Shown here piece by piece: positions 12,070 through 54,990 of a stretch of DNA of 64,000 nt; positions within the stretch are counted from its first letter, which is position 1, and each line of letters begins with the position of its first letter. Under the pieces are notes generated by a model. It was given only the letters and a program-made list of their open reading frames with translations, had not been told where the DNA came from and did no database searches. The position numbers and the translations under genes are program-made. Origin of the DNA: Mytilus edulis (taxonomy: Eukaryota); contig NC_092346.1 of assembly GCF_963676685.1 (NCBI RefSeq), positions 104,284,001 to 104,348,000 on the forward strand, given 5' to 3'.

Positions 12070-12399
12070 ATGTCGAATCCAACTAATATTGACGAGTTTC
12101 ACAGTGACAATATGAATATAGAAACACATGGCTTAGATTGTCAAATAAAAACAGAAATTGGCTTCGTGGATGACAAATACAAAGTTATTGTTATTTTTAT
12201 GGTATGTCTCTGCGGTTTGAAAAAGAGAAACGTTCATAAAGAGTTTAAGATACAAGGATCAACTTATCTAGGTGAAAGCATAGACCTACACATTAGCGGA
12301 AAACACTGTACATATGATACGGAGAGAGTATCACGTTACAAGCAGAAATTTTTGCGACGTTGTTATTGTAGACATGAATCATACTCATACTCAAGATAA
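12070..12399 (+). CDS. Double H-C-CxC motif protein, cluster gene 1 (109 aa, long linker)
   Basis: ATG-started ORF with an acidic N-terminus and HGLDC-x21-CLC-x25-HISGKHC-x17-CYC. Same Cys/His skeleton as the five downstream paralogs. Confidence 0.75.
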   Translation: MSNPTNIDEFHSDNMNIETHGLDCQIKTEIGFVDDKYKVIVIFMVCLCGLKKRNVHKEFKIQGSTYLGESIDLHISGKHCTYDTERVSRYKQKFLRRCYCRHESYSYSR

Positions 12400-14432
12400 G
12401 GCTACAAGTAAAAAGGTATATTATTCTTTTCTTATATATCAACTAAAGTATCAAGAATACAAAACATTGTATGTATAGCGAATAAAAAAATAGTGAACTG
12501 AAAATAGAATGTTTCTGCTTTATCATATTATTCAGTTATTGCTTCTTTTTTTATTAAAAACGTATGACAAAAATCGAACTCCATAGTAAATTAAAAAGAG
12601 AAGGTTCATAAAAACTGACAAAACCGAACATTCAGCTTAGTTGACGGAAAACAATTGTCGTATTCCAAACTTAGAACATATATTTACTGAAGAAAATAAT
12701 GTGTTAAACCTGTTTAAAACCAATCTCATTACACTATAAACCGATAAGATGACATAGGCTTTCTGATTATTGCGCATGTAAATACTATTGTTTTCAAATG
12801 AGAACGTCATTTGGTTAGATGTAACTAATTATTGATGTGTCAACTTAAAAAAATGTTTTGCAATGACAAAGTGGTAATTAGTTACCATTTAGGAGAGAAG
12901 CATATGACGAGTGTCGAATGAAAGATTTTTAGCCGCATGTATTTTTTCATATCTTCTTTTGAAATATTGTCGATATGTCAAAACTTCATTCTAATGCAAT
13001 TCTTATGTAACAATTGTTTTAATTGGCTAAAATTTACCAATATATCTACGCGTCGCCAGTTAAACTGCATTTGCGCCTATTGAAGGTAGCATCATCATCA
13101 ACTACAGTACTGGTATTCTTAAATTATATATTTGTTTAATGTTTTGTTATTGTTTTTTGTTTTATGTCATTTCAAACTAAGTCCTGACGATTTCTGGTTT
13201 TGTTGAACTTATGATTATCGATTTCTAATTAGTTAATTTCTCTCTCTTTTAACTTACAATTATTTGCATTTTCAAATATAACATACACTTTTCATAATTA
13301 CTATACATTTTTACAGGTATAATGAAGAAGCATGACAAAAAGTTCAAATGCCAAGACGAAGCTGAGTTACCATCAAAATAATATTTAATTAATCTGCAAC
13401 TGAACCAGAAAGACAAGTTTGATTTCTTTTGGCACATTTAAAGGATAGGATAGAGATTAAAAAATGTATTCAAAATATGGTTGAACTAATAGCTGCACAG
13501 TTTTACAGATATTTACAAAGTGACGACGGAAAAAAAGAACAGATTTTTAAAAGACTTTTCGAAAGTACATCAATGTTTTCAATTGACGTTTAATTTGTAT
13601 TAGTTATAATTTAAAGAATAAATATTTATTGAAACAAATCTTTAATTATTGTAATAGAGTATATGCCTATTGAATATTGATAAATTTGAATACCAAGGAA
13701 GCTAGTGATTTTGTGCCATTGCCTTTGTACCCAAAATGACAATTTCGTACCTTAAACTTTTCATTTTGTTCACATGAACAAAGCCATATTGTATCACATT
13801 TGACAGCTGCATATACCATTTCGTACGTGTTTTGCATGTCGTTTTATATATTTGATAATTGTTAAAATTTTATACTAACATCGGATTTGGGATATTGTAA
13901 AATAAAGGTTTATCTTAAAATTTAAAAAAATTATCATTTGTTCTGCCTAACATGCATTTAATTTTTTATTTATTTAATGTGTTACTGTTCAGTAGCCGTG
14001 ACAATGATTCATTCCCTTACCTATTCTCGTTTAAAAAATTGATTCCACTACACTATTTAGAAAATCAAATTAATAGAAATTTATCAGTAACCTAAGATAT
14101 GGTTTACAATCAAAATGAAATGTCAAACTGAACATATCGTCTCATAAATAAAGACAACGCTCTTCGAAATTCACAAATCGATTGACAAAAAACAAATCCG
14201 GGTTAAAAACTAAAACAGAGAGAAACACATCAATTATAAGAGGCGAACAATGACACAACACACACACTAAAATGCAACACACACAGAAACTAACTTTAAA
14301 ATAACAATAGCCTTTTTCCTGACTTTGTATAGGATATTTTTAGAAAAAAATGGTGGGTTGAACACTGGAAAATATTGATGGTCTATTACGTTTAAAAATT
14401 CTATGCTGTTCGACTGCGCCGATATAAATAAA

Positions 14433-14490
14433 AAGTAGGAGGAGCTGAAGACTTAACATGATTATATCTTGTTACAACGATATATATAAT
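14433..14490 (+). promoter_or_regulatory. Putative promoter of gene 2 (AAGTAGGAGGAG box plus TATA)
   Basis: AAGTAGGAGGAGCT starts 130 nt before the ATG and is identical to the motif 128 nt before gene 5. TATATATAA at 14481. Confidence 0.5.
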
Positions 14491-14562
14491 ATATTTGTTT
14501 TTACAAAGAAACAAAACCAAATACAATTAGCCCAATTTCAAATACTTCTATAAAACAAATCA

Positions 14563-15428
14563 ATGGATTCTAATTTTACTGATACTCAAGAAGCATATGA
14601 ATATACAGAAGAACTAATGGATGAGGCATGCTGTATAAAATACAAAGGTATGCACCCAACATATGAAGGTGCTTACTTGTTTGAGTTAAAATGCTACTGC
14701 AGTTTGCAGCGACCAGTTCGCCAATTTGTCCACGTTGGTCCTCATTGTAGACAACATAGAGAAGCCAGATATAAACGTGGAAAAAAAGTGATACATCTTC
14801 TGATGATATGCTATTGTGGAAATGTTAACAGATCATATAATAGACTAGGTAAGTCGACATTTTATTGATTTGAACATTTTGTGAATTGAACAGATTTCTA
14901 AATGAATAAGAGTACATTATTAAGCAATTATAATATTAGTATGCAATGCTATTAGATTTAAGTTTTCATGAAACTCCACCAATCTTAAATTCTACCATTA
15001 AATTAATGGTTCTGTTTTTAAAACATAGATTTTCAAGGAACACCATCATCGATTTAGTTTATTCGGATTTAACACTGTCGTGTAATGTTGTCATTTTAAG
15101 GTTATAATTAACACTGCCATTAAAGTGGGAGGTTTGGCATGCCATTAAACCAGGTTTAACCCTCCATTTTTTCATAAAATGCCCTGTACCAAGTCACGAA
15201 AATGTCCATTGTTACATGAAAGTTCGTTTCTGTGTGTGTTACATTTCGGTGTTGTGTCTCAGTTGTGTCGTAGTTCTCTTATATTTGATACGTTTCCCTC
15301 AGTTTTAGTTTGTAACCCGGATTTGTTTTTTCTCTGTCGATTTATGAATTTTGAACAGTGGTATACTATTGTTGCCTTTATTTATCTGGAATGATATACA
15401 TATCATGTTCTTCATTGCAGGCAACTAA
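14563..15428 (+). CDS. Double H-C-CxC motif protein, cluster gene 2 (97 aa), join(14563..14848,15421..15428)
   Basis: C-x20-CYC-x10-HVGPHC-x20-CYC (first His absent, CC present). Donor AG|GTAAGT at 14849 and acceptor TTCTTCATTGCAG ending 15420 give ...YNRLGN*. The unspliced ORF ends at 14868. Confidence 0.8.
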
Positions 15429-17498
15429 AGAAAGATGTTCCACAAAGAAAAAGAAAACTATGTTTATTAGAAGATGTACAAGATATACATATTCTCTGCT
15501 ATTTCAAGAAAAAAATTAAGAAAGTATATCAAATGATGGTCGCAAAACTGAGTATTTGTACATTTGTCATACTGCAGTGTTTGATAACAATTGCTATTTA
15601 TATTCTTAAATGGTCACTAGCTCAAAATCAAAAGTACGATTTCATTTTTTGTTCAATCATTAATCAAAGTGAAATAGTGAAACTAAATCCTTGTTAGCAG
15701 CCAGTATGGTTAATTTTGTCAAATTACGCTAAGAAACATTGATGATTAATTAATCACTTGCAAGTTGTTTATTTTACACTTTTTACAAATTGAATAAATG
15801 TTTTGCATGGTTATAAATCAAACATGAGAATTTTAAGCCAAATCTGTGAGCATGAATTTGACAGCTAGATGAGCTAGTGCCCATTTAAGATGATAACATG
15901 AACTCTTTCTTTTGTATAAAACATAGCTGCTAATGTATCTTGTTCGTGATTTTCGGCTTAATAAATGAATGGTGTTTATCGTTTTTCTTTTGCAAATGTT
16001 TATGTCAGGTTATCAAAATGAGAAACCAATATTTGTATTACATTGGGTTATTTCATTTTGTCCTACGACTTTTCGATTATGAGCGTTACTCATGAACGTA
16101 AATTCAGATACATCAAATGTATAATGCGAGTTAAAATGTAAGATGATAAAAAACCAAATATTTCTGATATGTTTCCAGTTCATTTCACACATGATTCAGG
16201 AAATATCTGCATCAGGCACACATGAAACAAAAAGTTGGAAAGCCAAAAGTATAATACGTTTGAGAACCATAAAATTGAAACCTCTTCGACTAAAACCCAA
16301 ATCGTTAAATATCCACGTCATTTGGTCTACGGGGGATAGTTATCGCATGTGCAATCATACCACAACATATCATTTATTTGTTCAACATATTGACTGGTAT
16401 CACTGTTATGTAATTTCATGACCTGGATGTGAGTTTCAATATGTCCAAATATGACATTTTCACCACAGTATTTAACTATTATTCTCATATTTAAATTTCT
16501 ATATGGTGATAAGCGGTAAAAAGTCTGGAAAATCCAATGTTTAAGAAAGATAAAGTCGTACACACTGTATTATATGTTTTTGTTTTTGAATACACATATA
16601 AACCGAACCGTTGGAAGTCAATAGTTTGTCAGATAAGTTTAGCGACTTTTTGACTGCAAGAAAATGCGTTTAAATCTTAGAAAGGACCGATGATATCATT
16701 AGTAAAGTCCTCCGTTTTAAATGATGCTTTATTAATAGAAGATAAAACAAATTAGGTTGGTAGGCTAGAGGATTACTGAATGTATTATCGATTTTTGTGT
16801 AAAAATATGAAAACAATGTTTCCATGCATTATTAGCTAAAACCGCAAATGATGTATCGCACAGCCTTAGGATAAACATACCTATAGATACCTTTGGCAAC
16901 TGAATTATGGTGTCCAAATTCGTACTGCATAACTAAAGATAACCGTATAATCAGATTGTAACTAAACAAGACATGAGGTTCAAAACTATCCATTGCCCAT
17001 AACGGAGTATAAATTCAGTAAAAACAAAATGAATACATTTTCGGAACATTTCTTCATTCTGAAAACGACACGACACATACATTTTTTTTTATTATTTTTA
17101 TATAAGTTGGATTAATGTAGACCTTTGTTTCACTTATTAAGCTATCGCTTCTTAAATAAAGACACACAAATTTCTATATTGACGTCGCGACGAATATCTA
17201 AAAAGTGTTCCTTAAAAATTACCTAAAATTTAACAAATAAAGTCCAGCCTTCGTTGACAGTCTTCGCTAAATTACAAGTATTGATTTACTTATCACGTCA
17301 GAACCACTTGGAAAAAAACGTGTAACAAAACGATTGGGAGATTAATTATACTTAACAGAAAATCCAGAATTTAAATATAATCATATACAACAGAAATATA
17401 TATATATATATATGATAGCGAAGATATAAAACATATGTTTTCTTTTATACAAGTATTAGTTAAAAGTACTGAATTTGAAAAACAATCAAAATTTTGAT

Positions 17499-17982
17499 AT
17501 GCAAAGTTTAATAAGTGTCGAAGAAAATGATGATGATAGTGTATATGAAAAGCACTTTAGTAATAAGTGTAAAATGATAAGAAAGTGTTTTATTAGAAAT
17601 GACCGAACTTACTATATCTTTCTTAGACATTGTTATTGCAACCAATATCCCTATGTCTTAAATAGAGATGTCAATTTTCGGGAGATGTCGGATATGAATA
17701 AGGACGGAGTTTTCATCCATCTTCATGCTGACTGTTTTCGTAAACATAGGCAGCATAAAGCATTTATAATTACTAGTAAATGTAGTTGCGATGCACGTCA
17801 AGAATACATGTCTAACACTAGGTAAGTTATAATTTGAGGTATTTTCCTTTAACTTATCTCTTCATAGCTCAGGTATAGTTCACTTTAAGGAGAGTTGTCT
17901 CATTGGCAATCATACCACATATTCTTTTTAATATTTAGTTAATTAGACATTTTTTAACAGAACGATTTGGGAAAAGAAGTAA
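17499..17982 (+). CDS. Double H-C-CxC motif protein, cluster gene 3 (114 aa if spliced), join(17499..17821,17961..17982)
   Basis: First ATG at 17499. HFSNKC-x20-CYC-x26-HLHADC-x15-CSC. Donor AG|GTAAGT at 17822 and candidate acceptor TTTTTTAACAG ending 17960 give ...SNTRTIWEKK*. The second exon is less certain than the first. Confidence 0.72.
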
Positions 17983-19065
17983 AAATTTAAAAGGGACAAA
18001 AAAATATGTTACTAACATCAAATTCTATAAAAAAAAAAATACAACTTATATATGATTATAAACTACAATGGGAATCGTATTGCTTATTCTTTAGTTTTCT
18101 CTGTTGTGGCATGTGTTCTATTATTTGTCTGTTTGTCTTCTTTCATTTTTAGCCATGGCGTTGTCAGTTTATTTTCGATTTATGAGTTTGACTGTCCCTT
18201 TGGTATCTTTCGTCCCTCTTTCCTAACCTGAGGAACTGTACAATTTTACACATGCCTTTTTACATTTCACGTTGACTACATTCACCTCTTTTCTCGATCA
18301 GCTGTTTAACCGTAATTGTCACAAAAAAATCATTCACAACAGTCAGGGCGGTCTCAAATTCTTCGGTTAATTCATTTGATAAAACCCTTTTCACCTGCCT
18401 TAACAAAATCAAAATATATTGAACGACTCTCACTGATATAATGTTCCTTTTTTTCCCTTTTTTTCATAATGCTTAACCTGTTTGACGGTAACATTATGAA
18501 AACAAGTTGTAAAGACTAAATATCGTCTTCACTAGACCATGTGTGTATATGTGTTGCCATATGTATTTTTAAGATGGTAAGAAGACAAAGATATTAACTT
18601 GATAATTAAATGCTGAAAATGTATAAATTCCTAATAATATTCAGATGATTGATTGATTGCAGGATGCTTAATGCAATGTGGCAAAAATTACGACGACATA
18701 TTTCATAAAAATAACTATCAATAAATTGATGCATCCATAGCGCTTTTCAAAATTCACTTAACCAGGTAGGCCCGAAACCTAAAATTGTCAGCATTAGATA
18801 TCTATACATTAATCAACATTTAATGAGCTTAATGCGAAACAAAGTCCTTTAAGTTGAGTTAATACAGATATGGAAAAATTTACCTGAGGCACTTTGAACC
18901 TAGGTCTAACAATTTCTAACTTAATTTACAAAATTAACCAACTGTTCTGTTATTTTTTGCTAAGGTTATGTATTTAAAAAAAAATGATATTACCAAAACC
19001 ATGATTTATATAGACTAGTGTTTTTATAATTTGTACAAATTTGTTATCTGTTTGTAATGAAACGG

Positions 19066-19098
19066 TCCAATCAATAGGTCACCAACGAAGTATATAAT
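19066..19098 (+). promoter_or_regulatory. CCAAT box plus TATA box upstream of the membrane micro-ORF
   Basis: CCAAT at 19067 and TATATAA at 19091, about 80 nt before ATG 19174. Confidence 0.35.
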
Positions 19099-19173
19099 TT
19101 GATATGTTTACCTCACAGTGCATTGTTAACGCAGAATAACAACCGTTTATTCCTTTAAATTGACTATTTTATA

Positions 19174-19314
19174 ATGGTGACCGGAGGAATACTCGCCCTT
19201 GCAATAGTATTACCTGTAGTAGGAGTACCATTACTGGTCGTTCTAATCTGGTTCTTAGTAAAACAGTACAGGAAGAAACATGCAAGAGGATTTAGAGATG
19301 TTCATACAAAATAA
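19174..19314 (+). CDS. 46-aa single-pass transmembrane microprotein
   Basis: Hand translation gives MVTGGILALAIVLPVVGVPLLVVLIWFLVKQYRKKHARGFRDVHTK*: 24 apolar residues followed by a basic stop-transfer cluster. Kozak-like ATAATGG, in-frame upstream stop at 19156. Confidence 0.65.
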   Translation: MVTGGILALAIVLPVVGVPLLVVLIWFLVKQYRKKHARGFRDVHTK

Positions 19315-21100
19315 TTCGGATAGCCTTGTGTTTTTAATACAAGTACATTTTTTGTTCATTCAAGTATAATAGTTAATTTTTCGCTTGACACAACCTGCAG
19401 ATTCTTTACAATGGAACAACATATGATTTGTATTTTGTTAATTAATCGTAGAAGGAATACCTGTCAGTATGACTTACAGTAAGGAATCATTTAAGATATG
19501 ATAAAAATATTTCGGAAACATTGTAGACATTTGCTTTGGCATTTGGGTAATTCCATTCAGTATATCAGTGATAACTCTGACTTTTGAATTGCTGTATGTC
19601 ATGAATATTTTTTTATCTTAATTCATGTTATAGTAATGATTTACCTTTATAAATATAGCTATAAATAATCGAACTTGTATACTATAAAATCAGGATCATG
19701 TTGGTACTGTTTATTTTTTTTTTCGAACTGTTGCATCCATTGGACAATGCCTATGCTAGGTTTTGGATTTTATGTATGTTTTGTATGGCTTTTATTCGTT
19801 CATTGGCCTTATTCATTTCTGTCTGTTTTTGGTTCAAAGAGATTATAGAATTATTCTACAAAACCTATGTTCTACTTTTTGTTAAAAAAAAACATTATTG
19901 AAATGAATGAATTTTTTATATCATTAGAAGACTATGCCAGTTATATTTATAAATAATGTTTCAGTAGATAATTATTATAAGAAAAATATCGAACTCGAGG
20001 TTAAATCAAAAAGGTGAATTGCAGAACAATTGATATTAGAATTATTAAGCGAACGGAAAGCAACTGTCACATTCCTGATCTGGAACAGGTATTTTCAGAC
20101 TAAAATGGTGGTTCATACTGGGTTTCATGGCTAGCCGAACCTCCCACTTAATGGCAGTACTTTATATTTCCGTTTTTAATTGGTTTGGCTCTTTACCCTT
20201 TTTATTCGAGCGTCACTTATGTGTCTTTTGTAGACCAACGCGTATCTGATGTACACAATTTTAATCCTGGATTTTTCACTATACGTTTGTTTACAATATA
20301 TTCAGACAAAATCATAAAAATTCAAGATGCATATTACATAAATCATATTATTTGCCTTTTGTTTAATTTTAACAACGTAAAAAGCAGTAGTATCACCTCC
20401 TGGTTGTAATGGAAATTATTAAGGTATTTTTAGATAGTTGTCATTTGGAAATTTCGGGAAAATTTCGTTACACAATGGCGTGATTGATCCATGGTATATG
20501 TTTATAAGGCGGTTGCGACATGAAATGGGTCAATCGAAATATCTGAATAGTGTTTACTTATTGATATCGACTGATATATGGCAAATATCCAAATGTCATT
20601 TGTACAAATATGTTTTAAGCACATAGAGTATAGATATGAAAAATGAAGGAAAAGCGTTAAATTTCATCTTTTTGAGATATTAAAAACTGTTCGGACAAAA
20701 ATAAGACGATTGAACAAAAAGCCTCATTCAGTAAAATACAACTAGTGAACAGAATCTAACGATAACACATTACCTTTAAAAACTAGAATTCTTTTTATTA
20801 TTAAAATTATCAATGCAAAAATCGCTGCATCGAGGCAAAACTAAAACTCAATATCATATCAAAACATTCTCGCGTACAATGAAATAAACTCAAGATACTT
20901 ATCCTGCTGATATGAATTTATGATATCTTACTCTCTGATATTAATGGTTGTAGTTGAGGGTAAATTTCTTTAAATAAATGTTACCTCTATAACATCCAGA
21001 AATTATTATTTGAAGATATAACTGAAAGTTTCTGCCAAAAAATCTGCAGTCAACGATTATGTTTGCAATTCTTTACTTTTCATTGGAATCAATTTAACTT

Positions 21101-21148
21101 AAGTAGGAAGAGATATTTTAATACATTAGTCATGTGTCTGTATAAAAG
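21101..21148 (+). promoter_or_regulatory. Conserved promoter block of gene 4
   Basis: AAGTAGGAAGAG ... AGTCATGTGTC (E-box) TG TATAAAAG, conserved before genes 5 and 6. Confidence 0.6.
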
Positions 21149-21248
21149 TAATACAGCAGTAAAAGCTAACCATAACGTAGAGTTAACCAGAATATACCGA
21201 AACGGTTCCATTTTGATGACTTTAAGATTATTATATTTATTTTTGAAA

Positions 21249-21544
21249 ATGGCATACAATGAAACGTGTACTGAATTTGATGATATTTATGATGATTACA
21301 TTCGTGAAAGCAACTCGTGTTCAATTAGATACATAATCAAAACGTTTTTTGATTATTACTAGTATTATTATTATGAAACGGATTGCCACTGTAAAATCAA
21401 GAAACCAGTTCGGATATTTTATCACACAAAAGGTGTTTGCAAACCCTACATTATAAAGAAAATGAGTCATGGGCGTTTGCATCAACGTCTTTTTATATGA
21501 GATGCTATTGTGGCTATGAGAAAAATTCATGTATAATTACTTAA
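21249..21544 (+). pseudogene. Pseudogene paralog of gene 5 (cluster gene 4)
   Basis: MAYNETCTEFDD...TFFDYY*YYYYETDCHCKIKKPVRIFYHTKGVCKPYI...RLHQRL/YMRCYCGYEK. In-frame TAG at 21360, +2 T frameshift at 21490-21494, first His replaced by Arg, donor retained at 21551. Confidence 0.85.
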
Positions 21545-22787
21545 TATAAGGTAAGATATTGCTTATAAACAAAAATAATGTAAAATTAACAATAGCAATT
21601 TACATCTCAGGTTTACGTTTTGTAAAGCGCCGCAGTACTGCCATTCTTAATAGTAGATATTTTTTCAAAACTATTTAAAAAAAAAAATGTAGATGTTTAT
21701 TCAATGTCAGAATATCGATACGGTACATATTATTTTATACTGGATGTTTGTTGAAAATATTTTAAGATAAAATCATGACAATTCAAGTTGCATATAACAA
21801 AAACCATATTATATGCATTTTGTTTAATTCTAACATAACAGTAGTATAACCTGCTAGTTGTTATGGAAATTATTTAGGTGAATTTAGATAATTGTCATTT
21901 GAAAATTTCAATACAAAATGGCGTGATTGGTCTATTTTCCTGTTTACAAGACGGTTGTGACATGAAATGAGTCACTTGAAATATCTGATAGTGTTTTTAT
22001 TTATATGAGAGTTCAAAATCATATCGAATGACATATGGCAAAGATCCAAATGTCATGTGTACAAATATGTTTTAAGTACATAGAGTATAGATGTGACAAA
22101 GGAAGGAAAAATAAACTTTGTTAAAAGTCTTCCTTTTGAAATATAAAGAACTGTTCGTTAAAAAATAAGATAATTACACAAAAATCCTCACTCAGAAAAT
22201 GCAATAAGTATACAGAATTTAAACGAAAACACATTAATTTTAAAAATTTTAATTCTTTTGAATATTCCAAAAGTCAAAACAAAAATCGCGACATTGAGTA
22301 TATTTCAAACTAAAAGGTTTCAAACATATAAGTATGATGTACGCGGTAAAACATTTCTAGGCTGTTAGAAGATTTTACTAGAATGGTTTTGACAATTTAA
22401 TATCTGATGTTACTACCATATTCCTTAGATGATAATATCAATTAAGATATTACAACAGACACTGCAATATACCAAAAAGAACGTAAACAACAGAACACTA
22501 AAATCATTTCTTGAGATAGATTTATAGATTGCAGAACAAAAACTCAATACCATATCAAAACATGCTCGCGTATAACGAAATAAACTCAAGGTACTTAACC
22601 TGCTGATATGAATTCATGACATCTTACTCTCTGATATTAATTGTTGTAGTTGAGGGTAGATTTCTTTAAATAAATTTTCCTCTATAACATCAAGAAATTG
22701 TTATTTGAAGATATAACTGAAAGTTTATGCCTAAAAATCTCCAGTCAACGATTAATTCTTTACTTTTCATCGGAATCAATTTAACTA

Positions 22788-22835
22788 AAGTAGGAGGAGC
22801 TATTTAAATACACAAGTCATGTGTCTGCATTAAAG
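22788..22835 (+). promoter_or_regulatory. Conserved promoter block of gene 5
   Basis: AAGTAGGAGGAGC-TATTTAAA...AGTCATGTGTC. The TATA position reads CATTAAAG. Confidence 0.55.
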
Positions 22836-22915
22836 TCATACAGCAGAAACAGCTTATCATAACATAGAGTTAACCAGAATATATCGAAACGGTTCCATTT
22901 TGATTACTTTAGAAA

Positions 22916-23203
22916 ATGGCAAACAATGAAATAAACACTGAACCGGATGATATTTATGATGATAACAATCATGAAAGTAACTTATGTTCAATTAAATACA
23001 AGGGCTTAACGTTTTTCAGTTATCATTTCTATAAAACGGAATGTCACTGTAAAAGCCCGAAACCAGTTCGGGAATTTTATCACACAAAAAGTGTTTGCCA
23101 ACCCTACATTAAGAAAGAAATGATTCGTGAACGTTTGTATCAGCGTCTTTATATGAGATGCTATTGTGGCTATGAGAAACGTTCATATTGTATAATTCTT
23201 TAA
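22916..23203 (+). CDS. Double H-C-CxC motif protein, cluster gene 5 (95 aa)
   Basis: AAAATGG start, HESNLC-x18-CHC-x10-HTKSVC-x20-CYC, donor AG|GTAAGC at 23210, six nt after the stop. Confidence 0.85.
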   Translation: MANNEINTEPDDIYDDNNHESNLCSIKYKGLTFFSYHFYKTECHCKSPKPVREFYHTKSVCQPYIKKEMIRERLYQRLYMRCYCGYEKRSYCIIL

Positions 23204-25299
23204 TATAAGGTAAGCTATTGCTTATAAACAAAAATAATGTTAAATTAACAATAGCAATTTACAACTCGGGTTTACGTTTTGTAAGGTAGTACTGTCATTC
23301 TTGATAGTAGATAATTTTTCAAAACTATTTGTAATTTTGAATTTTGTAAAAGAAAAGATGTAGTTGTATATTCAATGTCAAAATGTCGATACGGTACATA
23401 TCATATTAATAGTGTATGTTGAGTCCTAGTAAGGAGGTAGAGGATACCAAAGGGATATTCAAACTCATAAGTCAAAAACAAACTGAGTGAGCCACGACCA
23501 AACAAAAAAAATTATGAAAAGATAAACACAATATCGAAAACTAAAGAATGATCAAAACAGACCCTTCACAATCCGAGGAAAATACAGATAGTCTGATTAA
23601 ATGAGAACAAAAAATATCAATATTTCAATTTTTATGCCTACTATGTTACACTAGAATTTTTCAAAATATCTTTATATAAGCTTTGCTAACATTAGTTTGG
23701 GTTTTCCTGAAGAAGTGATACTAGTTTAGCAAAAAATGCAAATAATACATTAAAGAGGGAGGACATATTTCCTCTATGTTATACTCACAGGCTAGACATT
23801 TTTAAGTCGGTTAAACTTATAAACAGTTGGATAACAAAGAGAATTAACAATATTAATAAAACAATAAGTCTACATTTTTGCATCTTTCTATAAATTGAAC
23901 TGTAAACTGCTGCTAATGGCAATAATGAAAAAATGTGTTTTGTTGCTTTGCATCGAATGTTTTGAATGAATGAATCTAAGCTGTTTTGCATCTGAAAGAG
24001 CTTTCCGTCAGTTATAATGTATCCTGTTTGAACTGTTATGACAGAATAAAAGATTGAAAGTGCATAATAACCGAGCTGAACTCATTTATCAATCGTATAA
24101 GATAAATTGATATCTTTTTGCAAATAAAGTAACTAGAGTGTCTACATACTATATTGTTTTTCTTTGTTGACATAGTTGAGTGTTGTTATAGTGAGTAAGA
24201 TAACAACACAATTTTGACAACCGCACTGCTCGGTTTTTGACGTGTATATCTATAATGTCTGTTTGCTTTTTTTTATTATGAAATTTTAGGCGACTGTCAT
24301 ACAAGTGAGATGTTTTGCTAGCTATAATACCAGGTTTAATCCGCCATTTTGAGCATAAGGAAATATTTGTACCAAGTATGGAACATTAAAATTGCTAACC
24401 ATTTGTTTGATGTGTTTGACCTTTTGATATTTCCATTTGTTAAGGGTCTTTTCATTTATAATATCCCTTGTTCGGAATTTTTTATTATTTTACTGTTTAG
24501 ACCTTATTATCAAACCAATTCAACCATGCAAACTAGGTAAAAGTCAGACGAAAAACATGTTTATCTTACAATTATAATGTAACCCAAATATGACTACATT
24601 TTTTTCTTTAAACTGAGAGTTTGGCATTACTACTAACACTTAATGTGAATTTAATAACGCAATGAAATATAAAAATGTGACCAAAAGAAATAAATTGCTG
24701 CATGAAAACATCTGTTCACAACCTATAGGTATATAAAGCAATGCATGAGAGTTTTTTTAGTTTTCTTTCAGAAGAACCAACACATCGTCTATCTGCTTAA
24801 AATTTACTAGACAAAATGTAAACATTAGTTCCTGAATGCTGAAAAGATAGATCAAAGAAATCTTTTATAAAGAAAAGGGCATATGATTAATTATTTTATA
24901 AAAAAAAAATCAAAGGAAAGGTTATGAAAGATGTTCTTAAAAAAAAACACTAGACAGAAGAAGCAACGTTATAATCTCATGTGAAAAGAATCAGAGTGTT
25001 CTTTAATACTTGAAAATAAAATATTTGCAGTAATTTTCATTTCAAATTTTCCGTTGATTAGAACAATAAACTAATTAAACATTTTGCAAGTAGGAAAGAG
25101 ATATTATAAATTGATTAAAGTATGTATACGTATGAATAAAAGGAGATGTAATCTAAATGTCAAAAATATATATCTATAAGTTATAAAAAACACAACTATT
25201 ATTTGGTATAAAAGCTATTTGAGAAATAATGCCGACACTTCAAATCTAGTATAGTTGACAACACATAGACTACTTCTAATTATATTCTCTTTTTTGTAG

Positions 25300-25500
25300 G
25301 TAAAGATATCATCAAGATGTGTTTTGAAATAGATATATCGACAGTAGCTTCTTTTCAGATGATAACGGAAAATACAGATTATTATATAATTTTTGACATT
25401 AAAATTGTTTTAAAAATGTGAAACATCTGATGAAAAAATGTAAAAGGTGTGTGTCTAAGGAATAACAATTGATAAACGTTAATAAAACTTATTGCAATTA
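25300..25500 (+). other. Putative non-coding 3'-UTR exon of gene 5
   Basis: CTAAT branch-like site, pyrimidine tract and TAG ending 25299. Homologous to 36712-36900. AATAAA at 25481. Confidence 0.6.
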
Positions 25501-26092
25501 AAAATCTATACTAGTAATTCAGAGAACCATTAAAGATCTTTCCACATCAATTTTCAAAGTTGTATTAAAGAAGCTTCTTTTGCTTACTGATTAAAAAATA
25601 TATGTTTTCTATGTATTTTTGTCTAAAAAAAAAGTGTGTATTTGGTACTTGTAGTTTAAATAATGTCACTTCCAGTCTTGTATGATAAATTATTTCACAG
25701 ATTCCAAAAAGTATATGGTTTTTATATAATTCAGCATGTAAAAAAGAGATACCTTGCAACATCCGGTTTAGTAAATGTCACTTTCGGTCTCATATTTACA
25801 TTCTTTTGCCTGTAATAAGGGAAATAATTACTACTTCCGGTTTAATGAAGGTGAAATCTGGTCTCAAATGATCGGTTTATATTTGTCTATCTAAAATAAA
25901 TATGGTTTCTATTCACTTTTTATGCAAAAAAATGCAAAAAAGGACACTTCCTGAAGTTTTGAAGGTTATATGACAACTAACGTTTTTTAAAAGACCTTTT
26001 GAATGTGTTATGAACTAACTTGAAGTAATAATCAATTAACCTTGTATCTAAACATTTTAGGTGCAATAACTCCTATAAAACTTCTTTATAAA

Positions 26093-26610
26093 AAAGATGA
26101 TGTTGTATGATTGCCAATGCCTCTACAAGAGACCAAATGACACAGAAATTGACAAAACTAGAGGTCACTGTAGGGCCTTCAACAATAAGCAAATTCCATA
26201 CCGGATAGTCAGCTATAAAATGAACAAAAATGACAAATGTAAAACAATTCAAACGAGAAAACTAACGGCCTTATATATGTACAAAAAATAACGAAAAACA
26301 AATATGTAACACATTGACAAACGACAACCACTGAATTACAGGCTCCTGACTTGGGACAGGCACATACCTACAGAATGTGGTGGGGTTAAACATGTTATCG
26401 GGATCCAACCCTCTCTTACCTAGAACAGTGGTGTAACAGTACAACATAAGAACGAACTATAAAAATCAATTGAAAAATGCTCAACTCATCAGAAGAATAT
26501 ACATATAATGAAGTGTAAAGACGTCATAAACAGTCAGAGAAGAACATGACCTTGTGTAATGCCAAGATACAGGTATCGACAGATTGTAGATCCATGAATG
26601 TGTATATGTA
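26093..26610 (+). repeat. Interspersed repeat family B (AGATGTGGTATGATTGCCAATGAGACAACT...)
   Basis: Homologous to 40122-40470, with related copies at 36020-36430, 53270-53680 (-) and 60520-61225 (interrupted). Confidence 0.75.
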
Positions 26611-27989
26611 TATAAAAATAAGATTATATTGTTTCAGACCAAACTTATCATATCTTCAACACAATCAAACAAACAATTACACTAGTTCTTTTTATATATA
26701 TCTTTAAAAGTGTCAGAGTAGATACAAAAAAAAAAAAAAAAATCAAAATTGAGAACATGACCTTGACCTGCAATATTGAACTCAGTTTCTATGTTAATAT
26801 CCATGGGCCTCAAATGAAAAAAGTTCTAGGGTAATACAGCTAACGGTTTAAAAGTTACAAAAATATACCGACTAATTTATTTGGTAAAGTAAGAAAACTC
26901 CCGTAAGATTTCACTGTATCGCTTTGATCCAAAATTCCTGATGATGTAAGGAACAATTCAGAAAAAGAAGTTTTGACGATATCTTCTTTTTTTGTTCCGA
27001 ATCAGATTCCTACTAGATGAACTGTGAATGGGGATATAACTCTTACAAAGAAAATTGTGTAGCTTAAATGGATGAAAGTTAAAAGTGCATACACTACGAT
27101 ACATTATAACAAATATCTAGGCGACATATTGCACAACAAAACAAAGTTTGACGGAAGAAAAAAAAATATCATCATAACTCATACAATAGGTCTTTCAAAA
27201 GGAAAGTGGACAGAAATTATTATTTAGAAATAAAAACTAATTGTCAATGGCACAACTATTACGTTGGTGGGATTTTTGTTGCTTCATCTTTAATTCTAAA
27301 TGTAAAGTTTGTGATTTCGGGGTTGAACCTTTGAATTGTTCGTTGTGTAACTAGTGTTTAGTTGACGGCTAACAATTCATGATTTTTCAATAACTCTCAA
27401 AGGTAGATAACGAGAACGTATATCAAACCAAAGCAAATTAAAGGTAATAGACAACAACATTAGTCAAACATTCCTAATCAAAATGATTTTTATAGTTGTT
27501 ATTACTTGTTATGATAAACACACGAGACAAAAAATGGCTGAAAAGGCAATTTGAAAAAGAAAAACTTACAACTGTCAAGTCTTAGTTCTGGTAAAAATCC
27601 ATTTTAAATAAAATAACTACTAAAAAATTTGGTCATGTATATATTGTTAAAAATAGATAAAAGGAGATATGCTTATAAAACCAAAAGTTACCAGAAATAT
27701 TACGATTTGTTATATAATCTGTAAATGTAATTTACATAGGTAGCACAAAACGTACTCTAGATAAAATTTCTTATAAGTAAGAACTGATCTGGAGCTCTGG
27801 ATCATTAACTTCCTTAGAATTTGTATTCATTTGATCTAGATAAATTGATCTATTACAATTATAAGCCAGTGTTAAAAAATATGAATTATAAATAAATAAA
27901 ACTTTTTAAAAAATTGTCAAAACAGTATCTCCTTTAAAAGATCATGATTTTGACAACATATATATTAAATCATATTTTTCTATAAATCC

Positions 27990-28170
27990 GTAGTCCATAT
28001 GAGATATTATGTGCTATTGAACCAATAAAACTTATGCCTTCATTTTGAGAAAATAAACCAGATACAGCCAGATGATTTATTTGTATATCAAAAGTGTTAT
28101 ATTTGTGGTTTAGAATGTTAAAATGCATTTATACAAGGACTGAAACTTACATGGATAAGAGGTTGCATAT
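27990..28170 (+). mobile_element. Decayed L1/Tx1-like LINE ORF2 fragment
   Basis: Broken frames read NKPD ... GL ... NAFIQGLKLTWIR, resembling the FIWxxKPDKI...GGL...ALKLTWIRR region of Tx1-like ORF2. Confidence 0.4.
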
Positions 28171-30357
28171 ACTCATAATGAATATGGGTAAGGAAAGTCT
28201 GTTTCGAAGAACAAGTGATATCTATTGAACTAATCTTAAAACGCCCATGAAAACGTCAAAAAAAATAATTGAAGATTTTGTTTTTACTTTGAAAACCCTT
28301 CATCAAATAAGAAAACCATTGTTTTATATTTTTCATGATGGGGTTTTTTAAGCCGACTATATGGTATGGGTTTTTATCATTGTAAAACGTCGTACGTTTG
28401 CATATAATTGCTTGCATTCACATCATTAGAACTATGGTGGTAGTTTCATTTGCAATCATGACACATCTCCTTATTTTAAGCTTGAATATGAAAGTGTATG
28501 ACTTGACAATGAATCAACACAGTATTCAATATTCAAAAACTTCCACATCTATTAAAGCTAAGATTTATGATAATAAACATTTGTTGCAGGATTTGAAAAA
28601 AATAAATATTTCAGTCTGAAACCTCCTCATTGCACTAGTTCTAGGCTAGTTCCTCATTCATATAGAATCCGACTGGCCAAGTTATTACTTGTGACCTTAG
28701 CATTGTCAATAACATTTTTCTGCGAAATGTGTTATTCAAAGGTCAGAAATATAGTGAGCTCATTTCAATAGGAAACAAAACTTGCAATATTAATGAATTC
28801 AGTCGATGATTATACCAGGCAATGGGTTTAAAGCGAAAAGAAGGCAGAGATACTCTTAAAGATGGCTGTGAGTTTGTTGATCAAAACTAAAGGAAAAAAC
28901 TGAATGAATCAATGAATACACATGATTCATCTATCTTCAAACTCCAAATGTTGTCCTACCTATATATACATCAACGACGCTAACCAAATATAACATTTTT
29001 AACGATCACAAGACTGTTTTATGCTCTTCTGAAGTTTTAACAAAAGATGATGAACCTAACCGTCTTTCACTGGCTGGATACCCAAAACTACATACATTTA
29101 TTAGCATTCAAATCTAGGCTTAACGTTTAATTTTAATCTACCATATCTAGGGCGCTGTTTATCAGTTGTGGATGCTGGAATATTCGACGAAAGACCTGTT
29201 AGAGTACATAACTCAAAGTTTCTATCATCTTTCAATATAACCGTTTTCACTTGTATACCACATTCTTAACTTAAAGACAGATTGAAAGATAACAAGTAAA
29301 ATAACAAAAATACCGAACACTATGCAAAATTCAAAACTCAAAACTGAAAGTCTTTTTCCAAATGCCAAACTCAAACTCTCAAATAAATCAAACGAATGGA
29401 AAACAACTGATACTAGAATATATAAAGAGTTTTGAACAAAACTATCGGTATTGTTATTTGAACTCATTTTCAAAATAAGCTAGAATTATACATTAACTTC
29501 TCTTTCCACTATACAGATGATGCTCTCTCATTAAATCAGATTTATGAGTTTAAATGTCCGTTTTATATCTTTCGTCGTTCTTCAACAAATTTAGAAATTA
29601 TAACGGAATTTAGATGGTGTATTATTTTAGATCCTCCTATTTAGTCATTTCTTTTTTAATAAATTTTACGAATTAAATATTTTATAGCTAACTTTAGCTT
29701 CAGACCACGTCTCAATGCAGATTATGAACAAAAAAGATAGGCTTTCTTGTGTACAATTTGGAAATTAGTATGGCGTTCATTATCACTGAACTAGTATATA
29801 TTTGTTTAGGGGCCAGCTGAAGGACGCCTCCGAGTGCGGGAATTTCTCTCTACATTGAAGACCTGTTGGTGACCTTCTGCTGTTGGTTTTTTTTCTATGG
29901 TCGGGTTGTTGTCTCTTTGGCACATTCCCCATTTCCATTCTCAATTTTATTTCTGTTTCAACGCATTTCAAACAGACAGTGCAAAGTAAATTTATTACTA
30001 AGAAATAAAGTCTTTTCTAAATTTCGAAAAACAGCTGTCATGTTTCTGGCTTGGTAAAGGCAGCTGTTTTTAAGAAAATTATGGATTAAAAATTGTTTTA
30101 TTGCTAGCAAAAATACGTAGAGACAGGGAGGGCCCTATATTCTGACTAAGACGTAGCATAAGAAGGTGTTATAATTTATCTCACTCTTAATTGTCTTAAA
30201 AAGGATAAATCTTTATCAATATCATGAAATAAGGACGCCTTAAGATAGTCATAAAATCCTTTCCGTCACAAATATTGTTTTGTATAGCCGTTTGATGTCT
30301 TCAAAATGACATTAGATTGAATACTTTTTTTTTATAAAAATGAGATTTGCAGTTCGG

Positions 30358-30672
30358 TTAACGACAATGTATAAAAAAATGTTCCGAAGAATTCAACCTG
30401 TGAAAACTCATTAAAGACACCAGCTGTATATGAAGTGTATGTAAAACTGTCAAGCTCAATTCATCTAACGGTTGAAGATTAATGTTAAATGAGGTAAAAT
30501 AATTTTTTAACGTAACTATTGATTGCCTTAAACAACATAAAAGAGCAGTCGGTGAAAAAATGGTGACATTCAATGTATATTTTGTTTTCAATTCTTTTTG
30601 ATAAATCATGAGAGTCTCTAAATCTCCTTGAATATAACTATTTCCTGGTGTCCAAACTCTCACAAAAGACAT
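30358..30672 (-). mobile_element. Probable decayed LINE remnant
   Basis: The ORF contains IQGDLETL and ends EHFFIHC, resembling post-RT and C-terminal zinc-knuckle motifs of LINE ORF2. Confidence 0.3.
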
Positions 30673-31903
30673 TCAACATCATATTATAGAATTATCCTAA
30701 CACAAACGTTTCTTTAAGTCTACAAATGCGTGATATATATCTGTTCTCTATATTTCATCTTCATTGTATTTTATTGTCGTTATTATAGTTATATAAATAA
30801 TTATTAATCTTACTGTATATCATAATACCTGTATTCATATTTAAATATATTGGACTTATTATTCTGCTGTAGAAGAAGATGAATTGTTGTAAATAAAATT
30901 TTATTAACACCTCCAGGCTTGGATAGTCATAAGATTACCCTTGCTCGGACTATCTAAGGACATAATTTTTGACAGCAAAAACATGTCGCTAGTGAGTTGA
31001 AACGTATCCTATTTGGAATGTAATCATATGTAATTTTAGATAATAGTCAATTGGAAAATTTCAAGCATATTTCAAAACATAGTGGTGTGGTTATTCCGTT
31101 TTAATTGTAACCTCGTTTAAAGTTTCATATAATAAGTAATATCTATCTATAAGAATGACTTCAAAACCAAATCAAACGGAAATTGGAAAATGGCGTAGTT
31201 CCAAATTTCTAGTCCATTTTTCTTTGTTATATTTACAGGTTAATTTCACAAACGAATAAATGTTATACAATGACAAAACGTTAACTTGAAATTTTTGAAT
31301 ACTTTCGAAGCAAAATATCATTGAATCGAGGCAATTTTTGCCGAAAAGCCTCACAGATAATCATAATTTTCAGAAGTAAAAATCATGATTCGAAAAGGGC
31401 AGACAACATCATGGCAAAAAAAACGAAAAAAAACCCACGATAAACAGAAAATTAATGCACGAAGCTCTTGGAGGTAAAGCAGTTTTTCATCAGATGATTG
31501 ACCTTTTGATTTTAAACGACCTCAACTACTGGTTAATAGTGGTCTTATTGTAGTATCTGATATAAGTTTTCAAAGTGATTTTTTCATTTCGGAAAGCTCA
31601 AGCAAAGTGAAAAAAGATAGAAAGTATACGTCAATGAGACAAAAACAAATCGATTTAAAATACCAAAAGTATATACAGTACAACAAACTTTTTCAACAAT
31701 AGAAATATATCTATACAATATGTCAACTTTTAAATCATCACTGGTGTAGAATATTTATGACTGTCTGAGATCTGCTATGAAAAAAAACTTCCTTAAATTA
31801 TCACATATTTGATTCAACACTATACACTCACTGACGATCTTCTTCCATTGGCACAAAACATGACACATCAAGTCAACGATGACCTTTTTTTAATTCTCAG
31901 AAT

Positions 31904-31949
31904 GAAGGAGGAGATATTCAAATTAAAAAGTCATGTGTCTGTATAAAAG
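31904..31949 (+). promoter_or_regulatory. Conserved promoter block of gene 6
   Basis: GAAGGAGGAGATATT...AGTCATGTGTCTG-TATAAAAG. An upstream AGTCAACGAT (31871) is also found at 21048 and 22743. Confidence 0.6.
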
Positions 31950-32026
31950 TGATATACACGAAAACATTTAATCATACTATAGAGGTTACCAGGATATTTC
32001 AAAACGGATTCATTTTTGATAGAAAT

Positions 32027-32299
32027 ATGACAACCAACGAAACGTTCATTCCGAAAGATATTTATAACAAAAATGAGCATCACGGCGGAAACTGTTCAAT
32101 TGTATTTAAGGGTAAATCGTGCTGTGAGCGATATTATATCTTTGAACCGAATTGTCAATGCGCTATCCCAAAACCTGTTCAAAAATGGTATCACAAGAGC
32201 AGTTATTGTCAACCTTATATTAAAAAAGAAATTGTTAACGGACGTTTGTTTATTTATCTATGTATGAGATGCTACTGTTATGAGAAACACTCATCTTGA
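32027..32299 (+). CDS. Double H-C-CxC motif protein, cluster gene 6 (90 aa)
   Basis: True ATG at 32027. HHGGNC-x19-CQC-x10-HKSSYC-x20-CYC, shares CQPYIKKE and MRCYC with gene 5, donor AG|GTAAGA at 32318. Confidence 0.85.
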   Translation: MTTNETFIPKDIYNKNEHHGGNCSIVFKGKSCCERYYIFEPNCQCAIPKPVQKWYHKSSYCQPYIKKEIVNGRLFIYLCMRCYCYEKHSS

Positions 32300-32671
32300 A
32301 TGAATGTTTGATATGAGGTAAGATATCGTATATCAACAAAATAACACAATATTAACAAAAATAAATAACAATTCACTTTAAATAATAAAACTATACTGTC
32401 ATTTTTATAATATGTTTTGTAAAACTACTGTTAAATCAAAACTTAACCGAATAACGTAGATTTTACAAGTATGTAGTTTTAAAATTACTATAGGGTAAAT
32501 GATAAATGATATAGTAAAATAAAAGTCCTAGTGAGGTTGATAGCATGAAAAAAATATAAATACTTCATGCTAAGTTTGTTTTATTGAATATCTCAAAACA
32601 TATATGCTTTTCAAATATTAGTTTCGAGATAGGAATTAGCAATTGCAACGAATTCCCAAAAGAGCAAAACT

Positions 32672-33240
32672 AAAGTATGGGTCCGGTAAGGGCCGATTTT
32701 GGCCTCAAACTTCAGGTTCATCTGATGAAAGATTTTGGTCACTTTTTAAACACTTTTGTCTACTTCAGTCGATTCAATTAGTTTACGTGAAAGATTTGAA
32801 CTGATTTAGCCAAATTCAAGCTTAAATATGAAAAATATTTCAAATATACCATAATATGTCACTTTTCAAATGTTTTTTTTTTTTAATGAAAGTGGCCGCA
32901 TTCATGTACAAATTCAACCCTTAGATATGTTATGTATTATCATCAAATACACTTACATTTAAATATTAAGAAGGAACACAAATGCGGCCACTTCCATTTA
33001 ACAAGTAAACCGTCTTAAAATTACTAGTACCTCAAATGATAAAATTGTGAAGATTTCAGTAATTTAGCATGACTTCATATAAAGTACCCGATACATGTGC
33101 ATTGTATTGTCAAAAATATCCCATATCTATGTAACAGAAATATTCCACACTCCGATAAATAGCTAATAGTTTACATTCTAACATTTTTGTAAAACCGCTA
33201 TATTTTGGGGCAAAAGGGGTCTTACTGGGCATACTCCTTT
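32672..33240 (+). mobile_element. MITE, degraded copy inside the gene 6 intron
   Basis: Collinear with 58534-59116, with imperfect terminal inverted repeats. Confidence 0.75.
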
Positions 33241-33964
33241 CTTCTGCACTTGTTTTACTCACAGGGTAAACCTTTTAAAGTTGATAAAACTTTCATGTAT
33301 ACAAAAAATCTTTATAACATCAAAAAACATAATTAGTCTACAGTTTTTTATGTTTTTATAAAATCAAAACGTTATACAGAGCTACCAATTGCAGTTTACG
33401 TCAATTTTGAAACATTATCGCAAATTATAAAAGCTCTTGGGTTTTTACATCGAATACATTCAGTTAATCAAAATTAAATCATTTTGTATCTGACAGAAAT
33501 ATAGAACTACTTCAAATAGGATGGTAATTTGGTTTTGAATATCCTTTTTTTAGTTTTATTGAATTATACCAAACTATTATAACTTAACTTTTGTGAAAGT
33601 TTAGGACTGTACCAGATCATATTGCACTGTTGTCTCTTTTGTAAATACTTAACCATCGTCCACTTTGGTTTTTAAAATGTATAACGTTTACTATTTTTTA
33701 GTCAAATCAGAATAAATGTGATTAATTTTACATCATTATTATCATACTGATAAGGATATCTGTTAATTTATATATTCATTCATATTTTATAGATTTATTT
33801 GTGATGTCCTTTTTCTCATTTTTGTTTATTGGCCAGCTACAGCCTGTTTTCGGGTGTGTGATTTTCTCGCTGTGTTGAAGACCCATTGGTGTCTGGGCTG
33901 TACTTTGGTCGGGTTTTGTCTCTTTGACAATTTTCCATTTTCAATTACATACATATATATATAA

Positions 33965-54465: not shown

Positions 54466-54990
54466 TTTATGAGTTACAATTTATGACTAAAATTAGCAAA
54501 GACCCATCGAAACAACATTTAAATTTAACAATACTTTTAGATAATTGGATGATATATTGGCTCTCAATAATGACGACTTCAGTATGTATACTAAAGAAAT
54601 TTATCCCGTTGAACTTACTTTAAATAAAGCTAATACTAACAATGACCACTGCCCTTTCCTCGATCTTGATATCTATATCATTAACGGGAAGCGTAATACA
54701 AAAATTTATGATAAAAGAGATGATTTTTCATTTCCTATCGTTAATTATCCATTTTTAGATGGTGACGTTCCCTTGTCACCATCTTATGGTGTTTATATAT
54801 CTCAACTTGTACGATTCGCTCGTGTATGTAACAACATATTAGATTTTAGCGAGAGAAATTTATGTATTACTGAAAAGTTATTACATCAGGGTTTTCGATA
54901 CCACAAACTAGTCAAAACATTTACTAAATTTTATCATCGGTATAAGGAAATAATTCGTAAATATAACTCAACATGCAAACATCTTATACG
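54466..54990 (+). mobile_element. Penelope-like element reverse transcriptase/thumb fragment
   Basis: (Y)LDDIL, PFLDLDI, KIYDKRDDFSFPIVNYPFL, YGVYISQLVRFARVC are typical PLE RT C-terminal motifs. Frameshifted just before the DD motif and 5'-truncated. Confidence 0.88.

Follow-up and report, generated by a model that had tools for sequence, protein, structure and literature searches.

We describe a family of small proteins encoded by six tandem gene copies in the mussel Mytilus edulis, in a stretch of 64,000 nucleotides (nt) that we call the window (contig NC_092346.1, positions 104,284,001-104,348,000, forward strand, assembly GCF_963676685.1). The copies are named g1 to g6 in their order along the + strand, and residue numbers follow g5. 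The proteins consist of two homologous halves that share a conserved set of Cys and His residues, and the fold predicted for them is all-beta. The reading that we favour, and to which as a whole we give somewhat better than an even chance, is that these are real protein-coding genes of a mussel-only family, and that their products are beta proteins without a leader that hold two zinc ions through His-Cys3 units.

A duplicated His-Cys3 signature in a mussel family

Conservation was measured on 23 representatives of the family, which have 16-53% identity to g5, apart from one close ortholog (P0003, 87%). Seven residues are invariant in this set: C24, C43, C45, H56, C61, C82 and C84. Two more, H19 and S90, are present in 90% or more of the representatives, and overall identity in the family is 20-30%. 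The initial annotation of this DNA had described the six Cys and the second His as fixed, which stands; it missed the first His, which is a feature of the family as a whole. The pattern H-x(3-5)-C-x(17-23)-CxC-x(10-26)-H-x(3-5)-C-x(15-20)-CxC fits 22 of the 23 representatives, the exception being g2 of the window. In g2 the first His is replaced by Leu and in g4 by Arg, so that the absence of this His from both copies had been correctly noted; the Mytilus galloprovincialis ortholog of g2 (P0004) retains the His. The two modules align with each other in register (hhalign probability 92%, E 5.3e-7), and thus the duplicated module that had been read from the sequence is a real internal duplication.

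Can such a signature arise by chance in AT-rich DNA, with a GC content of about 30% in the window? In a six-frame translation of the window, the pattern C..CxC..H..C..CxC has 5 occurrences, which are exactly the five intact genes, and it has none in 100 first-order Markov simulations. Open reading frames (ORFs) that start with ATG and have at least 90 amino acids (aa) number 10 in the window, against a simulated mean of 2.5.

A word-indexed search with g5 finds 2 proteins, and a profile search of 1.84 billion representatives finds 10 matches, all of 87-115 aa. A further profile search and cluster look-ups in public protein collections raise the total to about 40 sequences. Only two members are named, VDH89555.1 and VDH89556.1, each annotated as "hypothetical predicted protein" in M. 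galloprovincialis, the first being the ortholog of g1 and the second that of g2. Their consecutive accessions, and a longest contig of 262,891 nt recorded for both, suggest that they are neighbours. For two other members, P0017 (P0008-type) and P0022 (P0009-type), the longest contig on record has 382,999 nt in each case, in a European Nucleotide Archive (ENA) assembly, and the family is probably clustered in their source organism too. Searched against the whole 1.37 Gb genome, in which the host contig exceeds 104 Mb, the family profile finds only the six loci of the window. A search of metagenome contigs with P0032 found no related loci.

The family is known so far only from mussels and is lineage-restricted, in agreement with what had been proposed from the window alone. 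A literature search on the accessions VDH89555.1 and VDH89556.1 found nothing, and among the titles and abstracts retrieved on mussel Cys-rich families, which concern secreted families or unrelated topics, none describes the His-Cys3 family. For M. galloprovincialis, the genome paper reports that over 5000 genes belong to uncharacterised families restricted to the Mytilus lineage (PMC7653742), and therefore an orphan family is unsurprising in itself.

BLAST joins g2, g4, g5 and g6, and does not detect similarity of g1 or g3 to g2, g5 or g6. The subfamilies are joined in profile-profile comparisons through the P0009 group, with probabilities of 96% (short-linker), 95.6% (g1-like) and 97.6% (g3-like), so that the homology of g1 and g3 to the rest is established at the profile level, via an intermediate subfamily, and only there. 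Six co-oriented paralogs with ATGs at 12070, 14563, 17499, 21249, 22916 and 32027 had been reported in the initial annotation. All six are found there; five of them are intact and belong to one family at the profile level, while g4 is a pseudogene and g1 and g3 lack a link by BLAST.

A tree of the family gives each window gene a close counterpart from other public sources, with terminal branches of 0.00-0.29. Between the paralog clades, the internal branches measure about 0.5-1.8 changes per site. If the close counterparts are orthologs, as the named M. galloprovincialis ones are, then the duplications took place long ago and the copies have persisted. Old tandem duplications would have led to two subtypes, one with a short linker between the modules (g2, g5, g6 and g4) and one with a long linker (g1 and g3); g4 is provisionally assigned to the short-linker subtype by its similarity to g5. 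The ratio of nonsynonymous (dN) to synonymous (dS) substitutions, which had been suggested as a check, can be read for g5 versus g6 (dN 0.39, dS 0.81, ratio about 0.48) and indicates moderate constraint, all other pairs being saturated. The sequences suggest fast evolution around fixed ligand positions, with paralogy or haplotype divergence as other possible sources of the differences.

Predicted fold and candidate metal sites

In all members, the N-terminal 21-28 residues are acidic (net charge -1 to -8), as first described, and the core is basic (+2 to +15) and aromatic-rich. No member has a hydrophobic leader or signal peptide in its N-terminus. All copies align at their start ATG, with a conserved start Met, and in g1, g2 and g5 the reading frame is closed by stops 2-4 codons before the ATG; the early observation that a signal peptide is absent thus holds.

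These features bear on a different explanation of the conserved residues, in which the six Cys form three disulfides and the products are oxidised mini-proteins, for example immune effectors, exported or compartmentalised by a non-classical route or by means of an unseen signal exon. The number of core Cys is even, as this would need, and in the models the strand positions place cross-strand Cys pairs at the hairpin bases, where disulfides could form. Orthologs diverge fast, and titles and abstracts describe many tandem, fast-evolving, presence/absence-variable Cys-rich effector families in mussels (PMC7653742). The missing leader, the conserved start Met and the stops just upstream of it in g1, g2 and g5 nevertheless count against export, and the defensin-like Pfam matches are single-member and non-significant. 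Moreover, a His is conserved at a fixed distance from the first Cys of each unit, which a disulfide scaffold does not need; metal ligation is thus favoured over disulfides, and we consider the disulfide explanation unlikely.

An AlphaFold2 prediction for g5, the query for the structure models, has a predicted local distance difference test score (pLDDT) of 71 with 8 sequences, and of 82 with 23 sequences (predicted template modelling score, pTM, 0.68). The better model is all-beta, with core blocks at pLDDT 89-93 and strands at residues 11-14, 25-31, 37-42, 52-56, 62-70, 73-82 and 91-94. In unit 2 of this model, H56 closes one strand, C61 opens the next after four residues, and C82 and C84 come where the strand after that finishes. 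Unit 1 shows this order too in its sequence: C24 is directly before the hairpin and C43 and C45 directly after it, and H19 is in a coil region.

There is no recognisable sequence or fold relative in the databases searched. Pfam gives no meaningful match for the five intact proteins, and a Pfam-A hmmscan with 35 members and E-values up to 10 finds no family common to more than one member. The family profile has 0 matches to PDB sequences, searches of the ESM Atlas with g5 and with P0009 gave no usable match, and Foldseek finds nothing at E <=0.001 in the PDB (both models) or in BFVD (second model). The best VIA-align Z is 4.6 for the first model and 5.5 for the second, where the tool's note gives a best Z of 7-8 as typical for models without a clear relative. 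That the spacing does not match the familiar zinc-finger classes, as initially stated, is in line with this lack of a Pfam, PDB-sequence, Foldseek or significant VIA-align match.

We propose that the product, of 90-115 aa, without signal peptide and presumably cytosolic or nuclear, would combine an acidic tail of about 20 residues with a basic, aromatic-rich core. Two homologous units would form this core, each with a strand, His-x4-Cys, a beta-hairpin and Cys-x-Cys, and each would hold one Zn2+ by means of its three Cys and its His. Of these ligands, the first two would flank the loop into the hairpin, with the Cys-x-Cys dyad at the end of the hairpin's second strand, and the two units would be packed into one small beta-sandwich, held by two structural Zn sites. 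Judging from the conserved residues and their positions in the models, two metal ions are probably held by the duplicated His-Cys3 unit. The basic aromatic beta surface opposite the acidic tail could bind nucleic acid or an acidic or basic partner protein, and the tail could be autoinhibitory; such a binding role is weaker still than metal binding, and it is the weakest step of the proposal.

The same ligand set would serve equally if the His-Cys3 sites were functional and not structural, that is, if they buffered, sensed or handed over soft metals (Cu(I), Cd or Zn) in a small metallochaperone or detoxification protein of a metal-accumulating animal. Cys-x-Cys motifs bind Cu(I) in several copper proteins, and a tandem array could raise dosage. 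The proteins, however, have only two sites per 100 residues, the remainder is a well-packed predicted beta core, unlike that of metallothionein-type binders, and there is no similarity to any metal-trafficking family in Pfam or among PDB sequences. A metallochaperone thus seems improbable to us.

Returning to the structural zinc sites, there is a real chance that the unit is a new fold class. A more specific proposal is that it represents an undescribed zinc-binding fold class that arose within mussels, and that the genes may encode intracellular nucleic-acid or protein binders acting in lineage-specific conflict or regulation (for example antiviral defence, mobile-element control or the germline). 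This we put forward tentatively, at clearly less than an even chance. The initial annotation had seen here a lineage-restricted intracellular double metal-binding domain, perhaps of a nucleic-acid-binding or adaptor protein. That interpretation is partly supported overall; metal binding, the identity of the metal and the nucleic-acid or adaptor role are its hypothetical parts.

Gene copies, gene ends and upstream motif

The coordinates of the six copies and of the features around them are collected in Table 1. All copies are on the + strand; five are intact, with products of 90-109 aa, and g4 is broken.

Table 1. Gene copies, gene-end features and upstream motif in the window (CDS, coding sequence; a slash marks a predicted splice boundary)
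Feature	Position	Strand	Details
g1 CDS, 109 aa, long-linker subtype	12070-12399	+	ORF; M. galloprovincialis ortholog P0006 = VDH89555.1
g1 donor-like GT	12416	+	16 nt after stop
Upstream motif AGTAGGAGGAG	14434-14444	+	129 nt before g2 ATG
g2, 101 aa as continuous ORF, short-linker subtype	14563-14868	+	ORF from the ATG at 14563
g2 candidate exon 1	14563-14848	+	codons 1-95 and first base of codon 96; ends at donor
g2 candidate donor CTAG/GTAAGT	before stop	+
g2 candidate intron, 572 nt	14849-15420	+	pyrimidine-rich acceptor ...ttcattgcag/
g2 candidate exon 2, coding part	15421-15428	+	completes Gly, then Asn, TAA
g3 CDS, 108 aa as continuous ORF, long-linker subtype	17499-17825	+
g3 candidate donor AG/GTAAGT, overlapping stop TAA	GT at 17822 (ACTAG/GTAAGT, 17820-17825)	+
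Upstream motif AGTAGGAAGAG, 1 mismatch	21102-21112	+	147 nt before g4 ATG
g4 pseudogene	21249-21544	+	in-frame stop after codon 37 and frame change near 21480-21500
g4 candidate donor GT	21551	+	after stop
Upstream motif AGTAGGAGGAG	22789-22799	+	127 nt before g5 ATG; then TATA-like TATTTAAATA
g5 CDS, 95 aa, short-linker subtype	22916-23203	+	query for structure models
g5 candidate donor TATAAG/GTAAGC	GT at 23210	+	6 nt after stop
g5 candidate 3' intron, 581 nt	23210-23790	+	acceptor ACTCACAG/G, conserved with g6
Upstream motif TGAAGGAGGAG, 2 mismatches	31903-31913	+	124 nt before g6 ATG; then TATAAAAG
g6 CDS, 90 aa, short-linker subtype	32027-32299	+
g6 candidate donor GAG/GTAAGA	GT at 32318	+	18 nt after stop
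g6 candidate 3' intron, 947 nt	32318-33264	+	acceptor ACTCACAG/G

The pseudogene and its neighbour g5 come from a tandem duplicate of about 1.5-1.7 kb, in which 20271-21748 and 21732-23420 lie head to tail with 76-82% identity. The duplicate takes in the upstream region, the coding sequence and about 200 nt downstream, and the duplication is recent. The C-terminal RCYC of g4 and its stop (21542-21544) can be reached only via the frame change, and the g4 copy appears to be without a terminal exon of its own. The initial annotation had missed that g4 is a pseudogene, and also the splice donor at the gene ends, with candidate terminal exons in g2, g5 and g6. The donors, these exons and the upstream motif are newly described here.

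A GT donor lies at or near the stop codon in all six copies. In the gene model that we propose, each gene would have a promoter-proximal exon bearing the whole frame, and in g2, g5 and g6 a short terminal exon would follow after an intron of 0.57-0.95 kb. The candidate terminal exons of these three genes appear, from the sequence, to be short and almost wholly 3' untranslated region (UTR). With the strong acceptor at 15420, the spliced model of g2 would give a product of 97 aa ending in NRLGN, whose length and C-terminal end match VDH89556.1; by our own estimate, an acceptor like this would turn up within 600 nt with a probability of about 0.02. The acceptor of g5 (23790) is common to g6 (33264). 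The true C-terminus of g3 is uncertain, its stop lying inside a consensus donor; if this donor were used, the frame would run on into some downstream exon, and there are several acceptor candidates between 17939 and 20234. In g1, g4, g5 and g6 the stop precedes the donor, and thus the frame cannot extend into a larger protein. An arrangement like that of protocadherins, with variable first exons spliced to shared constant exons, was considered and rejected, since the g2 acceptor precedes g3, g5 and g6 have acceptors of their own, and the stops come before the donor in g1, g4, g5 and g6.

At 124-147 nt before the ATG, g2, g4, g5 and g6 all have the 11-mer AGTAGGAGGAG, with 0-2 mismatches and with TATA-like sequences after it. 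The 11-mer has been conserved even though the g2 and g5 proteins are only about 30% identical. With at most 2 mismatches, the 11-mer has 12 matches in the window against 4.5 expected, and it may be a family-specific promoter element.

Around the cluster there are no recognisable genes and no transposase, and a Pfam scan of the other long ORFs of the window gives no match reaching the curated cut-off. Such surroundings, together with the broken g4 and the loss of one ligand in g2, would fit an explanation in which the copies are non-functional, whether as decaying duplicates, as ORFs that are not transcribed, or as exons belonging to a larger transcript not yet recognised; the more than 5000 uncharacterised genes of the Mytilus lineage reported in M. 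galloprovincialis (PMC7653742) can be counted on the same side. We regard it as very unlikely. Five frames of 90-109 codons are open in DNA of 30% GC, the same eight residues recur in about 40 sequences that come from several sources, and each paralog has a close counterpart. The donor is conserved in six copies and the acceptor and the upstream motif in subsets of them, and the position of the stops in g1, g4, g5 and g6 speaks against a larger protein.

Two further observations concern the window itself. The longest ORF has 184 aa (54545-55099, + strand) and no Pfam match; we take it to resemble a repeat-associated ORF common in bivalve genomes. A short interspersed repeat with 76-78% identity is present at 15113-15200 (in the candidate intron of g2), at 20072-20158 on the - strand (inverted, upstream of g4), and at 24293-24350 (downstream of g5).

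Implications and comparison with known systems

How well does the reading as real genes for two-zinc His-Cys3 proteins hold against all the observations? Several weigh against it. In the window, g2 lacks the first His and its frame is nevertheless open. The case for metal binding consists of residue conservation and predicted strand positions. Superposition on WRKY1, whose ligand topology the unit would share, is weak (Z 3.3 with the first model, while with the second WRKY1 is missing from the 50 best), which makes this a resemblance of topology only. The 11-mer was not found upstream of g1 or g3. The dN/dS of 0.48 comes from a single pair and means moderate constraint only, and g1 and g2 have about 86-90% protein identity to their M. 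galloprovincialis orthologs by our own count.

What the family would mean depends on whether metal is bound. If the sites bind zinc, the unit would be a new compact all-beta metal-binding module, of about 35 residues per unit and without detectable relative, and the family would clearly exemplify how such a module arises and diversifies in a single animal lineage. Among the uncharacterised Mytilus-lineage genes, reported to number more than 5000 (PMC7653742), it would also be a tangible target that is easy to express, with the shared upstream motif as a handle on the regulation of the cluster. If the sites are without metal, this would be one more fast-evolving orphan family, of local interest only.

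The known fingers that most resemble the mussel unit are those of the WRKY-GCM1 superfamily (WRKY, GCM1, FLYWCH, MULE transposase), which like it are all-beta with one metal per unit, inferred in the mussel case. In both, judging for the mussel unit from its predicted strands, two ligands bracket a loop of 4-5 residues between strands, and a ligand-x-ligand dyad ends the hairpin about 20 residues on. The mussel unit could be a highly diverged, domesticated finger of this type, for example from a Mutator-like transposase, tandemly duplicated in one small protein. The spacing L-x4-L-x(about 20)-L-x-L (L, ligand) and the strand positions of the ligands match the WRKY description (PMC1702500), the superfamily has been repeatedly recruited from transposons (PMC1702500), and with the first model WRKY1 is aligned over 53 of 61 residues at Z 3.3. 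With the better model, however, WRKY is absent from the VIA-align top 50. There is no significant structural similarity and no sequence similarity between the two families: among 35 members, at E up to 10, there is no Pfam WRKY, FLYWCH, GCM or MULE match, and there is no PDB sequence match. The mussel ligands are His/Cys and then Cys/Cys, whereas those of WRKY-GCM1 are Cys/Cys and then His/His or His/Cys. The mussel family conserves no strand motif resembling WRKYGQK, the DNA-contacting first WRKY strand has no clear counterpart, and no transposase is nearby. The mussel proteins also differ in having two units fused in a stand-alone protein of 90-115 aa. A WRKY-GCM1 origin is in our view highly improbable: judging from the models, the ligand topology and spacing are WRKY-like, and membership of the superfamily is not supported.

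The best structural neighbour is the N-terminal domain of vaccinia A46 (Z 5.5, 65 residues aligned, root-mean-square deviation, rmsd, 2.7), followed by alpha-crystallin/CS (p23-like) domains (Z 3.2-4.8), all of them below the noise level of the tool. In these alignments sequence identity is about 4-14%, and neither A46 nor the alpha-crystallin/CS domains are known to carry Cys/His metal sites.

In its conserved ligands, six Cys with two His, the mussel family is like the two-site Cys3-His domains, such as protein kinase C C1 and CHORD, and a small module with two metal sites is suggested here as well. The spacing is different: those domains have CxxC knuckles and their ligands are interleaved, whereas in the mussel family H-x4-C...CxC is repeated sequentially, and there is no Pfam match to C1 or CHORD.

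Finally, the secreted Cys-rich peptides of mussels (myticins, mytilins, mytimycins, big defensins and CRP-I) share with the His-Cys3 family their taxon, their tandem arrays, their fast divergence and their small size. Mussel foot protein 6 (Tyr/Cys/Lys-rich, about 100 aa), considered as a further candidate, was dropped, since it is secreted with a leader, which the family lacks. The secreted peptides have a signal peptide and a disulfide array, whereas proteins of the His-Cys3 family begin with an acidic stretch that contains no leader, and each of their units has its conserved His. What makes the mussel family unusual is this clean duplicated ligand signature on a confidently predicted fold without recognised relative.

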